Origin: Octopus bimaculoides
Taxonomy: Eukaryota
NCBI RefSeq assembly: GCF_001194135.2
Contig: NC_068981.1
Location: 108,389,025 to 108,453,024 of the forward strand
Length of the DNA stretch: 64,000 nucleotides
Reading direction: 5' to 3'
Position 1 is the first letter of the stretch. The number at the start of each line of letters is the position of its first letter. Shown here in pieces: positions 37,209-61,144 of the stretch. Below the pieces are notes generated by a model. That model had not been told where the DNA came from. It ran no database searches and saw nothing but the letters and a program-made list of their open reading frames with translations. A program made the position numbers and the translations under genes.

Positions 37209-37354
37209 TGTGTTTTCCTATCCTGTTCCTGAAGGTAAAAATGCCCAACAAATAGTTGATAGCCTGCAAAAACAGGTAGAGTTGTTGGGTGCTGTTAAAG
37301 CTGGCAATTTCTATGTTGATTGCGAAACATATCAGTCTACTCTTCCTAATACAA
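37209..37354 (+). CDS. MED20: Mediator subunit 20 exon 2
   Basis: ttttcag|T GTG...; encodes [48 protein letters not shown]; donor A|GTAAGT. Confidence 0.95.
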
Positions 37355-38409
37355 GTAAGTTTCATTTATATTACATTTTATATTGCTTTATGTAATATAA
37401 ATTCAGTATTTTAATAGCTGAAGAAAGTTTTGTGTTAAAAAAGTTTCAGTTTTAGATATTATTTAGTATCAGGTTAGCCCTGATTGAGCAGATCTATAAT
37501 GACAGGCATTCAAGCTAGGATCATCTTGTTAATATTTTAAAGTATAATGAATGCAGGACTACGTTATTCTGAATATACATGTCCTCTTCCCATTTTAGTG
37601 TCAATAAGTAAGAGAGATGTGCTTTGGTATCTTTTTTGAAAGATATAGGTAAAGAATATAGATAAAAAAATTAATCTTGGGGTTTCAAATAGAATTAGTT
37701 TATGGACACAGAAAAGGTTGTGAAGAGTTCCCATCATATCAATGTTTCTCCTCCAACTATTATTAACCTGAAAGAATTCATTATGTGCATTGATTCTAAT
37801 GTTTGCTCAGGACGCTATACATTTTGAGGAATACTTGATGGATGTTTTTTTTTTTTTATTGACTCTGGAAAGATGAAAGACAAAGTGAACTCTTGTTGGT
37901 GAGTATATAGTAAATACTGCAAAACATTTTGTCCACTACTGTTCACTTCTTTATTTAATATGTTAGTTTCATTAATTCCCACCTAGTTATTCTAATCTTT
38001 CTAGATTACCTGAAAACTTTACAGTCACTATTCTGCCTTGAGTTAATTAATTTGTTAACTTTGCATCCAGTAGTATTTGTTAACTGTGAGCTGTATTATT
38101 GCATATAATCATTCTGTACTCAGTGCTTTCTTTCTTAAATATATGCTGTGCAAAAGTAGGTAACTCTTGGTGAAGTTATTAGATTAGAACGATGTGTTCA
38201 AAAGGGTTTACACATTTTGGGTAGAGTTAGTAAAATCTGCATACTTGAATGGTGCTTATCTAATCGATCTCTGAAAGTGGAATTGAAATTCAGTGTATAA
38301 AGAGACATTACTAACACCATATGCTTTGCTGATTTAGCCATCCACTGTATTTTAGAGTCTATAAATACTGTATGGAAATGTAACTCAAACTGGTAACAGG
38401 CGTGAATTC

Positions 38410-39930: not shown

Positions 39931-40094
39931 TTCTCTTGAGTACACTTGACTTTACACTCATAAAAAGAAGATATCAATTTCTCAGAAACAATTTCTTGGA
40001 GAAATGTAAATTGCATCCTAATGATTTTGGGGTAAAATTTTGGATTATATCAGTAGTTAACCTAGTTATTTACAGTGTTGATTTTGTTTTCCAG

Positions 40095-40345
40095 CTACTC
40101 AACGATTGATTCATATATTACACAACAGTGAACAACCTGCTACTTGTTTTGCTATTCTAGACACAGGCAATTGTCTAGTAGCTGACAGTCAGTTTGATGT
40201 CCTCATGCAACGATTAAAGGGTTTCTATCAACAAAGGAAAGGATCTAAAATTGAATCTAAAGGTCAAAGATATGAATATGGAGATTTTCTCATCAAAATC
40301 GGGACTGTATTAATGGCATCAAGTGTCAAAGGTATCCTTGTAGAG
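40095..40345 (+). CDS. MED20: Mediator subunit 20 exon 3
   Basis: ttttccag|CT ACT...; encodes HILHNSEQPATCFAILDTGNCLVADSQFDVLMQRLKGFY...YEYGDFLIKIGTV...KGILVE; donor GAG|GTAATT; phases consistent. Confidence 0.96.
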
Positions 40346-40610
40346 GTAATTAATAATTTTTATCATTATTATCTTTTCCTTCTATTCTTTTACTTGTTTC
40401 AGTCATTTGACTGTGGACATGCTGGAGCATTGCTTTGAAGGTTTTTAGTCGAACAAATTCACCCCAGGACTTATTTCTTAAGCCTATTACTTATTCCGTT
40501 GGTCTCTTTGGCTGAACCGCTAACTTATGGGGATGTAAGCATACCAATACTGATTGTCAACAATGATGGGGGGACAAACATAAACATAAAGACACACACA
40601 TAGATATAAA

Positions 40611-44040: not shown

Positions 44041-44731
44041 ATATAAAAAATAAGTAAAAATGAGTAAAAAATAAACCTTGGCAAAACTCCAGTTTAAATT
44101 TCTAAAACAGTTGAAGGCTTTCTTAAAAGTCAGATGTAAAATATAAAAGGTGAAGTTGAAATATGTACTAGCATTGTAATACAAATATAACTATATATAA
44201 GGTGTAAATCCAAATTCAAATGTGAAAGTCAAAAAAGTTTTATCCATATGGTATTTTTTCGGTTGACATTTTGAACCTTGCAGGGTGCCAGCAGGAATGT
44301 TCCTGGTTTAATGCTTGTTTATCCTGCAACAGAATGAAGAATTTTTCTAAGAGACAAAGATTACATTTCATAGGTCTTCTATAAGCTCCATGTTTGTATG
44401 GTGGTGCTTTTTCCAAAATTTTCCAGCTGATATTGAAAGGATGGGTGTTATTCTCCTTCAGTTGCCAGACATGTTTTGCAAGTTTTGTTGCTGTCCTGTT
44501 TTTGGTGTATCAGAAAGAATTTCGGTGGGAATAAAACTGAGTATTGAATGAATTTTCCAAAGCCCCTGTGTAAATTTTATATTTTTGTGAGCCATCTATT
44601 TGCACTTTAGCTCTATAAACACTTCCTTTTTCAAGACATTTACCTTCTAATGGACAGCAAGTCCTCGGATTAGATTCGGCACTGTGGTTGTTTGTAATAA
44701 TTTTTGTGTTATGCTGATTAATAAAAGAGGC

Positions 44732-44776
<45 letters not shown>

Positions 44777-44808
44777 AAATTTTAAAATAAAAACAGAACA
44801 CAAAGGAT

Positions 44809-44905
44809 TCTGCAGTACACGTGTTTCAAGCTTTATAGTCGTTGCATCATTATATTGGTATATAATTGATAGACAGGATGGTATAAAGCTATCTTCAGCT
44901 GCAAA
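44809..44905 (-). ncRNA. Type I hammerhead ribozyme motif in Penelope-like terminal repeat (GUA cleavage triplet)
   Basis: UUUGCAG-CUGAAGA-U-AGCUUUAUA-[44 nt]-UAUAAAGCU-U-GAA-ACACGUGU-A|CUGCAGA. 7-bp helix I, 9-bp helix II, palindromic helix III. U.U instead of G-C at 10.1/11.1. Confidence 0.75.
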
Positions 44906-46464
44906 TATATTCTTTCCCAAGTATTATATCACAAAGAAGAAGTCACCAAGAAAAAAGTAAAATGATTAAAACCTTCAAATATTATAATCCCTAAGTCCTC
45001 TCTTTTTAGTTATAAACACTTCTAAACCTTCTCTCATTAGCAACTCCCACATCAGATCCTTCCTGCCACAATTCAGACATTGAATTAACGAAGCCCGTAC
45101 TCTACCCCCAACCTGACTATGTACTGTAATAATTCAGTTTACCCTCGCATAGCTAGATTCTGACCATATAATATACACACATATTTAATAACCAGGGATC
45201 CATAATCCCACTTTTACAGAAAAATTTCTAAACCTTTCAGTCACTGACTCTAGGCTTTCGAATGACACTACTATACACAAAAGTAACATAAAATAACACT
45301 AATCACTGCAATGTTTTTTTATTATAATAATATTATACTAGTAATAATTAGGAGATGCAAACCCAGACTTCCTTATATTTATACACCAATACCCAATGAT
45401 TAAAACACGATTATAGCAGTAGTTTCACTATGCCATATAATTTACACTAATAGATAAACCGTAACTTCCCCAACCACAATATTCTTCTTATCAATGTACC
45501 TTTTCAAACCACTATGTTTTTTATCTTGTTTGCATTATTGTTGTTGGTGGTGTTATTTCTTATCACTATTACATTATGTAATACAATATTACTATTATAT
45601 TATATTACTACGGTTGAAGTGTTCACAATACTCTGTATTTTGAATTTTAACTTCCAATCCTAGTTTTCCCCTTTATATTTTCTATATATTTTATAACTTT
45701 TTTCTTGTTTACATTTTCTAATTATTCATTGTTTTGGTTTTTATATGGTCTAATTAGCATTTACCACTTCCATCATCATTTTATCCTCTAGATAAGTGTA
45801 TGTACCAATATAATAGATAAGTTCGTATGCTTAAGTTGTAGTGATGTGCTTAGACTGAAATGACCACTCACCACAAGAATATCATATTACAAGTTTTCTT
45901 TAGCCTGACATTATTTATTTATGACCCACCACTTGTCTTGGCCAACACAGTATCATGTATGTCTGTCATTTACGACCTCACCCTTTTAGATCTCTTTATG
46001 TCTCTTTATTTCCCTTTTTTTCTACTTTTAGGTTTTTTCTTATCCCCCTTAATTTTTAACTCTGTTTTTTTATTTCTGTACTTTTATATTTTACCACCCA
46101 TCTCCAACCCTTCTAAATAGCTTATATGCATCTTACTCTACTGTCCGGATTTTTTCTTATTGTTTCTTATATTACCCCCCCCCCCCNNNNNNNNNNCCTT
46201 TTTTGGACCCTCTCCTTATAGCTCATATAAGCTAGTATTGTTTATTTAGCATTCACTCTACCCTGAATTGTGGCACAATATGGACAGATTTCGGAGTACT
46301 GATGAACTTTTATATAAATGTATCAACTTAAAGGATAAAGATATTACAATGTATATTACAATGGACAATACTAAGTGGACTCTTACTTTTATCTCTCATG
46401 TTTCTCCTTTTACTTTTTTCTTGGTGACTTCTTCTTTGCGATATAATACTAGGGAAAGAATATA

Positions 46465-46561
46465 TTTGCGGCTGAAGATAGCTTTATACCATCCTGTCTA
46501 TCAATTATATACCAATATAATGATGCAACGACTATAAAGCTTGAAACACGTGTGCCGCGGA
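46465..46561 (+). ncRNA. Inverted second hammerhead copy with GUG triplet (probably inactive)
   Basis: Same core. Helix I is UUUGCGG/CCGCGGA, with a compensatory change relative to the other copy. Position 17 is G. Confidence 0.65.
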
Positions 46562-46667
46562 ATCCTTTGTGTTCTGTTTTTATTTTTAAATTTTAATTTT
46601 TTCTTTCACCCCAGCCACGATCTGGCATATACAGGTGCTTACAATTATCAAGTATTACCTCTCACAT

Positions 46668-46740
<73 letters not shown>

Positions 46741-47659
46741 GGGCTTCTTCCAGTTTCTGTCTACCAAATCCACTCACAAGGCTTCGGTTGGCCCAAGGCT
46801 ATTGTAGAAGGCACATGCTCAAGGTGCCATGCAGTGGGACTGAACTTGGAATCATGTGGTTGGAAGCAAGCTTCTTACCACACAGCCACACCTGCACCTG
46901 TAAAATAAAATTGTTCTTGTAGAAGTATTGGATTTTCATTTGGTATATTTTGTTTCAAATAGTTTAAATTTTTTCTTTATAATTCCAAGCAGAAACCATA
47001 TTAGAGGTAATAGTTTATGAATCAATAAATGACATACGCATTTTTTATTTTGCATTACTTTGCTGCATGCATAATCCTGTGATTAAAAAGTTTGCTTCTC
47101 AGCTGTGCAGCTTTATCTGGTACCTTGGTCAAGTGCCCTACTATAACCCCTGGCTGACCAACCCTTGTGAGTCAGTGTGGTTGTGGTAGACAGAAACTGA
47201 AAGATATGCTTTGTGCGCATGTGTGTGCGCGCGCGCACACATACACACACGTACGTTTCACAAAGTTGAAGTTCTAGAATTTGATTCAGGGTCTGAGAGG
47301 TGGGACTTTTTACACCTAGTACTTATTTTACTGGCCTCTTTTGTCAAACTGCTAAGTTACTGGGACACAACCACTGACTATCAAGCAGTGACAAGGAGAA
47401 ATAGAGAAGACACTAGGCTAAAGTGCCATGTTGTGGGGCTGAACCCAGAACCATATGTTGGGAAACAAACTTCTTACCACAGAGCCATGGCTGCACCTAC
47501 TAAAGCTGTTTGGGGTTTGTTTTGTATTGTGTTGTACTGTGTGGGAATTAAGTATTTTCTCTAGTTTTTATTGTATGCTTCTAATACTGTAACACTGTTA
47601 CATTTGTTGGAGAAGTTTTACTTTACATTACTATTGTTTCTCTTTTTTATTTGTATCAG

Positions 47660-47869
47660 GTGGAATATTATCCATGTGCCATAATCAATGATTGCTGGAA
47701 TTTAATGAAAGAACTTATTCAAAGTGTAATGGGTAATATTTTAGACAATCCTCCTGCAACTTTAAAGAACAAGTTAACTTCAGAATACAGTCCATCTGAC
47801 ACTGTGCAGCAATATCTTGAACATTTCAATGTTTTTCGCAAAAATGTCTCCGCAAATCAGTCACGATGA
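47660..47869 (+). CDS. MED20: Mediator subunit 20 exon 4
   Basis: ttgtatcag|GTG GAA TAT...; encodes VEYYPCAIINDCWNLMKELIQS...YSPSDTVQQYLEHFNVFRK...*. Joined CDS is 621 nt = 206 aa plus stop. AATAAA at 47873-47878. Confidence 0.95.
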   Translation: MEYYPCAIINDCWNLMKELIQSVMGNILDNPPATLKNKLTSEYSPSDTVQQYLEHFNVFRKNVSANQSR

Positions 47870-59990: not shown

Positions 59991-61144
59991 CTTCTATTTG
60001 ACCATTAACTTGTGTAAAAAAAAATATTTTTAATATCTAATGGTTTTTTCTTCGGGCTGAGTTTTTTAAATTTAATTTCATAAGTCCAACGGTTTTTTTT
60101 TTAAATGTACAGCGTTCCGTACTGGTTCGTTATCTAACTTCATAGGATAACATCCTAAATTAGCATCAATTCTCATTTACTTTGTCTTCTAACGGTTTCA
60201 ATACCGATATGCTATACAGTTTCATTACGTATCATGTCTTTTCAACTTGTTTTTTTACATGTAATTATAGGACAACTACGAATGTTGCCTATGAATGTTG
60301 TCTATGTTTACTGTCTGCAATGAATCAATCCGACCCTGAAGAGATACAATATTCCATATTTTATAATATGCATGAATTGATCTGGATATTGCATCGAAAT
60401 GATCATAGGTCATAATAAAGCTTTTACAATGGATCGTATTTTAGCTCTTATTTAAATCGATATAATATATATATAAATATAATATATATATGTAATATAG
60501 ATGTATATATAAAATATATATATAATTTATATATATATAAAATATATGTACAAAATATTTATATTATATATATATTTATATATATATTATATCGATTTAA
60601 ATAAGAGCTAAAATACGATCCATTGTAAAAGCTTTATTATGACCTATGATCATTTCGATGCAATATCCNNNNNNNNNNNNNNNNNNNNNNNNNNNNNNNN
60701 NNNNNNNNNNNNNNNNNNNNNNNNNNNNNNNNNNNNNNNNNNNNNNNNNNNNNNNNNNNNNNNNNNNNNNNNNNNNNNNNNNNNNNNNNNNNNNNNNNNN
60801 NNNNNNNNNNNNNNNNNNNNNNNNNNNNNNNNNNNNNNNNNNNNNNNNNNNNNNNNNNNNNNNNNNNNNNNNNNNNNNNNNNNNNNNNNNNNNNNNNNNN
60901 NNNNNNNNNNNNNNNNNNNNNNNNNNNNNNNNNNNNNNNNNNNNNNNNNNNNNNNNNNNNNNNNNNNNNNNNNNNNNNNNNNNNNNNNNNNNNNNNNNNN
61001 NNNNNNNNNNNNNNNTAATAATAATAATAATAATAATAATAATAAGAAGAAGAAGAAGAAGAAGAATCATAATCATAATAATGATAAAGGAAAATACAAA
61101 ATTTACCAAATTTACCATTTTTATGAAAGGAGAAAAATTCTACT

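Follow-up and report, generated by a model that had tools for sequence, protein, structure and literature searches.

The window, by which we mean the whole 64-kb stretch of DNA analysed here, contains three Pfam matches to Med20 on its plus strand, at 37210-37356, 40091-40348 and 47651-47830 (Med20 positions 7-55, 58-148 and 145-208, respectively). The second and third of these matches flank an insertion of repetitive DNA, which therefore lies inside a Med20 intron with the host gene on the plus strand, in agreement with the initial annotation of this region. Two arms, at 44776-44965 and 46405-46594, form a 190-nt inverted repeat that is 96% complementary and whose halves are 1439 nt apart. 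Both arms belong to a single Penelope-like element (PLE) family, here called family A, and the parts of the insertion are as follows.

44733-44775, no strand: (TA)n microsatellite, left flank; presumably half of the site targeted by the insertion
44776-44965, minus strand: inverted family A PLE copy, consisting of the 3'-terminal 190 nt; strongly 5'-truncated and tail-less
44958-44965: junction of the inverted and main copies, a few shared bases
44958-46594, plus strand: main 5'-truncated family A PLE copy, ~1.64 kb plus hidden gap sequence
44959-44994, plus strand: ORF remnant of the main copy, the last 11 codons (KMIKTFKYYNP) and stop, matching the C-terminus of P0001 (HKMIKTFRYYNP*)
46187-46196, no strand: assembly gap of 10 N, in the non-coding 3'UTR of the element
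46595-46665, plus strand: optional 3' tail, 66-71 nt, at one end only of the composite insertion; present in 17 of 59 family copies
46666-46692, no strand: (TA)n right flank, then (CA)n; presumably the second half of the targeted microsatellite

From 44958 onward the main copy is collinear with two copies found elsewhere (L084 and L085), and downstream of its ORF remnant it consists of a 3'UTR of ~1.6 kb. Both sides of the assembly gap align collinearly to L084 (94.6% and 94.9%), and other copies carry ~70-88 nt where the window has 10 N. The gap sits 270 nt upstream of the right of the two hammerhead motifs described below; it involves no reading frame and affects neither motif.

The arms had been described as the inverted terminal copies of one element. 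They are instead two independently 5'-truncated copies of one young, high-copy PLE, joined head-to-head in (TA)n, and this pattern recurs in the family. In published PLE insertions, an inverted 5'-truncated copy abuts the 5' end, a tail of 30-40 bp may be present at one end, and a microsatellite target masks any target-site duplication (PMC8557442; PMC11167929). The Med20 insertion resembles these structures in its inverted truncated partner, its one-end tail and its microsatellite target, and differs from them in the greater length of the tail.

Paired with each other in the Med20 pre-mRNA, the arms could give a 190-bp hairpin. Beside the insertion, at 44279-44656 on the minus strand, lies the remnant of an older and different Hydra-like PLE endonuclease ORF (CPLEGKCL...VYRAKV...LAKHVWQLK...CNLCLLEK), which is 31% identical to the family A endonuclease (EN; E=3e-13). 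Its 5'-truncated end abuts the (TA)n at 44733-44775, and the two PLE lineages appear to share one microsatellite target. No hammerhead motif was found downstream of this older remnant.

The two motifs and the changes in helix I

Each arm carries one hammerhead motif, and both motifs point outward.

44809-44905, minus strand: left hammerhead motif, core intact
44899-44905 and 44809-44815: left motif, helix I, 5' strand and 3' strand
44892-44898 and 44891: left motif, CUGAAGA and the U that follows
44882-44890 with 44829-44837: left motif, helix II
44828 and 44825-44827: left motif, U and GAA
44817-44824 and 44816: left motif, helix III ACACGUGU and A17
46465-46561, plus strand: right hammerhead motif, with G at position 17 (46554)
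46465-46471 with 46555-46561: right motif, helix I
46472-46478 and 46479: right motif, CUGAAGA and U
46480-46488 with 46533-46541: right motif, helix II
46542 and 46543-46545: right motif, U and GAA
46546-46553: right motif, helix III

Read from 44905 to 44809, the left motif is UUUGCAG-CUGAAGA-U-AGCUUUAUA-(44 nt)-UAUAAAGCU-U-GAA-ACACGUGU-A-CUGCAGA, and the right motif is the same except for its helix I (UUUGCGG/CCGCGGA) and its G17. The family consensus and the two window copies alike have the conserved core nucleotides (C3 U4 G5 A6 N7 G8 A9 and G12 A13 A14) and the A15.1-U16.1 pair, with a helix I of 7 bp and a helix II of 9 bp around the core. The helix I sequences originally reported, GCAG/CUGC at 44.8 kb and GCGG/CCGC at 46.5 kb, read as stated, and the cut in the left motif is predicted exactly where it had been placed, between 44816 and 44815. 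Helix III is predicted in two forms only: 2 bp closed by a 4-nt loop, or, between the two RNAs of a dimer, a duplex of 8 bp. When two consensus RNAs are cofolded, the prediction is a domain-swapped double hammerhead with the 8-bp intermolecular helix III (-51.1 versus 2 x -19.1 kcal/mol). The 44-nt insert in helix II had been described as a large loop; RNAfold predicts it as an imperfect hairpin that extends helix II, which would be better described as a long interrupted stem.

Position 17 separates the two copies. A17 is present in the left copy and in 57 of the 59 family copies compared, and G17 is private to the right copy of the window (1/59). G is the one base not tolerated at position 17 of a hammerhead, where it normally abolishes cleavage, as established by mutagenesis. 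Because of this G, the right copy is predicted to be inactive and should not cleave. The earlier claim that both copies fold as hammerheads thus holds for the architecture of both and fails for the right copy, whose G at 46554 had been overlooked.

We searched the window with a hammerhead descriptor that specified CUGANGA...GAAA, a helix I and a helix II of at least 4 bp each, a palindromic helix III and H17. Exactly one match was returned, the left copy; the right copy fails solely by its G17. In 100 first-order Markov simulations of the window, the mean number of matches was 0.01 and none had a helix II of at least 7 bp. With one match observed and a mean of 0.01 in the simulations, chance does not account for the motif, and the chance reading was rejected.

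The difference between the helices I of the two copies, an A-U to G-C double change, had been taken to show that the structure was under selection. The family consensus is GCGG/CCGC with A17, and the right copy keeps the consensus helix I. Relative to the consensus, the left copy has CG->CA in the 5' strand of helix I and CCGCGG->CUGCAG in the 3' strand. These three changes, together with a fourth difference upstream, are all CpG transitions; all three helix I CpGs of the left motif have decayed with pairing kept. We compared 59 distinct family A copies, extracted by BLAST anchoring, of which 58 were aligned for covariation. CpG sites of the motif are 7-12% diverged in the 59 copies, against 0.7-1.9% at other positions. 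The pair in question is G-C in 41 copies, A.C in 9, A-U in 2 and G.U in 3. Nine of the 11 copies with GCAG keep CCGC, and hence an A.C mismatch, and two are compensated, where ~1.1 A-U pairs are expected from marginal frequencies.

The family-wide covariation check (58 copies, shuffle control) likewise found no helix I excess above shuffles: the score was 0.048 versus 0.047, 200 of 500 shuffles scored at least as high, and pairs with double changes numbered 2 versus 1.8 expected. Because the changes are CpG transitions, most GCAG copies are uncompensated and covariation equals that of the shuffles, we infer no selection. The double change is an occasional product of CpG decay, not evidence of a selected structure. 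More generally, a 'compensatory change' between two copies of a repeat can arise by CpG decay, and only family-wide counts discriminate. The core is kept in 52 of 58 copies and is 0.8% diverged in the family, compared with 0.85% for the flanks; that it is no better kept is as expected, because the copies are dead. A lower divergence of the motif relative to its flanks was rejected as evidence, since the copies had been selected via matches inside the motif.

CpG loss also differs between the arms as wholes. The left arm has lost four of six CpGs and otherwise equals the family consensus; in the right arm every CpG is retained, and there are two to three private non-CpG changes. This asymmetry is puzzling if both arms stem from one insertion event.

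Family A as a Penelope-like element

The 141 nt around the right motif gave 1194 first-look matches in the 2.34-Gb genome, and among the 42 matches listed all were 96-100% identical except for one 59-nt fragment. A 34-mer from loop II has 256 matches in the genome. Most family A copies are solo 3' pieces, truncated at a variety of 5' positions, and their 3' ends lie at the equivalent of ~46594-46599 or ~66 nt further, followed by (TA)n. At least five TA units stand just beyond the 3' end in 45 of the 59 copies. Where copies neighbour each other (at least 15 pairs), all are arranged head-to-head (-,+), with no other configuration among them, and the distance between the inner boundaries of the paired arms ranges from 46 nt to 5.5 kb. 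Variable 5' ends combined with 3' ends at either of two places before (TA)n are the signature of target-primed reverse transcription and not of a cut-and-paste transposon. The insertion signature of PLEs is present: copies are 5'-truncated, the inverted partner is itself 5'-truncated, a tail may stand at one end, and the targets are microsatellites (cf. PMC8557442). The insertion in the window is young, with ~1-2% non-CpG divergence from the consensus.

Longer family A copies extend upstream into an ORF whose C-terminus reads ...CNCVTPSTCPLRGNCLAKNVVYSCEI...YLG...R...H...CQLC...E...N...CMH...YYNP*. Further upstream, this ORF contains an FKDD motif in a reverse transcriptase (RT)-like context; just the C-terminal part of the RT is readable, and the upstream RT region is N in every copy fetched. 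Pfam RVT_1 matches weakly over the YxDD end of its profile (E=0.029, below the cut-off), and GIY-YIG also matches weakly (E=0.2, below threshold), with the motifs VVYSCEI...YLG...R...H, CxCX5C, CxxC and CxH. Sequence searches with the EN against PDB and PHROGs were empty or insignificant, a homologous-protein search with the EN fragment returned two metagenome fragments, and the single-sequence AlphaFold2 model of the EN has a pLDDT of 32, too low for the model to be of use. An endonuclease of this type has ~13,000 first-look candidates in the genome.

The Hydra clade of PLEs has so far been described mostly from cnidarians. Family A resembles this clade in several respects set out for it by Craig et al. 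(2021, PMC8557442): a C-terminal GIY-YIG-like domain preceded by CxCX5C and followed by CxxC and CxH, a GIY-YIG core that lacks CCHH, (TA)n as the insertion target, and a hammerhead near the 3' end. Clade members with this C-terminal EN have been reported from Mollusca among other phyla (PMC8557442). Hydra elements are short (<3 kb; PMC8557442), whereas family A has a ~1.6-kb 3'UTR and an N-rich low-complexity linker. Judged by its insertion signature and its motifs, and with RT and EN matches below curated thresholds, family A appears to belong to the PLEs with hammerheads; its resemblance to the Hydra clade is a placement by motifs and not by RT phylogeny. The earlier identification of the element as Penelope-like is borne out to this extent by the insertion signature and the ORF motifs.

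Runs of N occur in several of the loci fetched. They measure ~480-1160 nt at the presumed RT-coding part in L087 and L088, lie upstream of the 5'-truncated copy in L089, and cover the hammerhead region at the 3' end of L085. These runs may be gaps of the kind that tandem or inverted PLE structures typically leave in assemblies. Long 'open frames' beside EN matches proved to be N runs and were rejected.

Related hammerhead families in the same genome

Applied to 293 kb of fetched flanks, the same descriptor found four further motifs of other families, with ~0.05 expected, and a slightly relaxed descriptor added a fifth, at 60332-60411 of the window. In these four to five additional families the core and the architecture are those of family A, and the helix I and helix II sequences are unrelated. 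Helix I in the other families is CUUC/GAAG, UUCC/GGAA, GACC/GGUC or ACAC/GUGU. Helix II spans 7-12 bp around an insert of 28-39 nt in families B, C and E, and helix III is an 8-nt palindrome of the form A...U in families A, B, C and E (ACACGUGU, AUAUAUAU, ACAUAUGU and AUGAUCAU). In family D the motif is of the classical minimal type: helix II has 5 bp and a loop of 10 nt, and the palindrome is only 4 nt long (ACGU). Families B and E have at least 400 copies each, mostly in head-to-head pairs. Between families many pairs are compensated, a covariation that is partly circular because the families were found with a descriptor that demands pairing.

For family A itself, the consensus contains CUGAAGA, GAA, A15.1/U16.1, A17, a 7-bp helix I, a 9-bp helix II and a palindromic helix III. 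Older subfamilies, chosen via the upstream UTR (where they are 75-84% identical), retain the consensus in the core and in helices I and III, and their loop II carries substitutions and an 8-nt insertion. The G10.1-C11.1 pair is absent from families A and B, in which U.U faces the core, and is G-C in families C, D and E; in family A, an alternative at the core is an A-U pair flanked by two unpaired U. The large loop II and the U.U had been singled out as unusual features of the window copies. They are not peculiar to them, since family B has the U.U as well, and a long helix II with an insert of 28-44 nt is found again in families B, C and E. By contrast, the proposal of a type I PLE hammerhead whose palindromic helix III implies action as a dimer fits the family consensus.

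Rfam covariance models gave no hammerhead match for the window, the region or four loci that include the sister families, either at the gathering score or at E<=10, and the scans returned low-complexity miRNA-like noise only. The Rfam search suggested for this motif was thus negative for family A and its sisters alike. Because even the classical minimal sister family is missed, the Rfam hammerhead models appear insensitive to PLE-type motifs.

Several individual copies deserve mention. The family E hammerhead at 60332-60411 of the window (plus strand) consists of GACC-CUGAAGA, a helix II of ~11 bp with G10.1-C11.1, GAA, AUGAUCAU, A and GGUC. Its inverted copy, at 60571-60668, runs into an assembly gap at 60669. 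The two lie tail-to-tail (+,-) across a TA-rich stretch of ~90 nt, with arms that are 100% identical beside the gap. Head-to-head being the usual order, this reversal may have arisen in the assembly. At ~2990-3170 of L034, a family C2 hammerhead is paired head-to-head with an inverted copy of itself ~70 nt upstream, and Rfam weakly scores the resulting hairpin as MIR393, MIR538 and MIR4378, a false-positive trap for miRNA annotation. At 2505-2597 of L047 (plus strand), a family C hammerhead (10-bp helix II, G10.1-C11.1, ACAUAUGU) stands head-to-head with a family A copy on the minus strand that retains part of the EN ORF, next to the 5' end of that copy. Apparently, the inverted partner of a PLE can come from another family, or the lineages share upstream sequence. 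The sole same-strand tandem pair seen belongs to family B (C5:109199253 and C5:109199524, both on the plus strand, 271 nt apart), and such tandem copies are what a dimeric hammerhead needs within a single transcript.

Function, alternatives and comparison with known systems

We consider it likely that a young, high-copy PLE resembling the Hydra clade left two dead, 5'-truncated copies at this locus, and that each motif is the 3'-terminal hammerhead module of one of them. The hammerhead reading is supported because the core, A15.1-U16.1 and H17 are common to families with unrelated helices. In active master elements, the motif on the sense strand, ~40 nt before the 3' end of the unit, would probably pair with a second copy through ACACGUGU, and the resulting double hammerhead would probably cut after A17, so that read-through or multimeric RNA is shortened to one unit. 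At the Med20 locus itself nothing would be selected, and both motifs would be neutral relics: the left copy has lost four CpGs, three of them in helix I, with pairing presumably surviving by chance, and the right copy has acquired G17 and should not cleave. Only the right copy, the one with G17, is in the sense of the Med20 pre-mRNA. Two counterpoints are that almost no tandem (+,+) arrangements place two sense copies in one transcript, and that the RT and EN assignments are below Pfam thresholds, with N runs and no full-length copy readable.

A narrower proposal, which we advance only tentatively and think more doubtful than probable, is that families A and B represent a functional sub-variant of the hammerhead, specific to a cephalopod expansion of Hydra-clade PLEs. 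This variant would have U.U in place of G10.1-C11.1, a helix II in the form of a long interrupted stem of ~25 bp, and an obligate dimer formed via the 8-bp palindromic helix III. If the U.U variant cleaves, then the accepted hammerhead consensus would be slightly widened and the failure of covariance models to find these motifs would be explained.

The main rival to the hammerhead-module reading, although an unlikely one, is that the conserved 3' module is a structural RNA element, such as an RT binding or priming site or a pseudo-LTR promoter, that is shaped like a hammerhead and does not self-cleave in vivo. The replacement of the conserved G10.1-C11.1 by U.U and the lack of an Rfam hammerhead match are both consistent with this possibility, as is the conservation among subfamilies of the whole 3'-terminal ~190 nt and not only of the core. 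Precedents exist as well, in that ribozyme mutants of the Anolis element (PAc) insert normally in vitro, with no reads ending at the cut site (PMC11167929), and Naiad PLEs thrive without hammerheads (PMC8557442). However, five to six families of otherwise unrelated sequence keep the consensus at every core nucleotide, at A15.1-U16.1 and at H17, which a mere hairpin would not need. Moreover, the palindromic helix III co-varies, and loop II tolerates changes that the core does not.

It is very improbable that the host has co-opted the insertion as a self-cleaving or dsRNA-forming intron element that regulates Med20, with its structure selected at this locus. The pairing of helix I in both copies despite three changes, and the hairpin that the arms would form in the pre-mRNA, might suggest such a role. 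However, the changes are CpG transitions at hypermutable sites in a family without an excess of compensated pairs, the sole copy in the Med20 sense has G17, and the insertion is both young and one of >1000 similar copies. An equally remote reading, which takes the insertion for a DNA transposon or MITE of ~1.8 kb whose 190-bp terminal inverted repeats contain a hammerhead-like sequence by chance, accounts for the 96% identical repeat around a non-coding interior, but was rejected because most copies are solo arms with variable inner ends, paired arms have widely varying inner boundaries, longer copies show the interior to be the 3'UTR behind an RT/EN ORF, just one end has the tail and a target-site duplication could not be discerned.

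The preferred reading, that of hammerhead modules in a Hydra-like PLE, places family A among RNAs with close precedents, since PLE hammerheads in invertebrates, including those of the Hydra clade, are already well known. We found no description of cephalopod hammerheads in the literature searched. Family A thus adds a cephalopod, Hydra-clade-like example to the link between PLEs and hammerheads, and one genome holds several high-copy families with a long helix II and an 8-nt palindrome.

In the hammerheads characterized from PLEs, helix II is long, an additional nucleotide separates A9 from 10.1, helix III is palindromic and activity is that of dimers; pairs of them on opposite strands lie 100-700 bp apart (PMC4209133). 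Family A matches the type I hammerheads described by Cervera and de la Pena (2014, PMC4209133) in its short helix I (4-7 bp), its longer-than-usual helix II, the extra nucleotide between A9 and helix II, and a palindromic helix III that implies a dimer. Its genomic setting also corresponds, with the motif near the 3' end, in the pseudo-LTR and on the sense strand, and with thousands of dispersed truncated copies, some in opposite-strand pairs. In contrast, the G10.1-C11.1 pair that is called highly conserved in PLE hammerheads gives way in family A to U.U (or to A-U between two unpaired U), the helix II insert is 44 nt long and partly self-paired, and the helix III palindrome has 8 nt versus 0-4 nt in the published examples (PMC4209133). 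Metazoan PLE hammerheads are reported to cleave poorly in vitro (PMC11167929). Minimal or type I hammerheads of PLEs are also treated by Lunse et al. (2017), at least as that work is cited in PMC6765202.

Metazoan non-LTR retrozymes, which are tandem repeats of 170-400 nt that give rise to circular RNAs, offer a second comparison (PMC7229834; Li et al. 2026, 10.64898/2026.07.22.740005). Like these retrozymes, family A has a type I hammerhead with an unstable or palindromic helix III and a derivation from PLE pseudo-LTRs. Unlike them, it occurs as dispersed 5'-truncated copies and head-to-head pairs rather than as tandem arrays.
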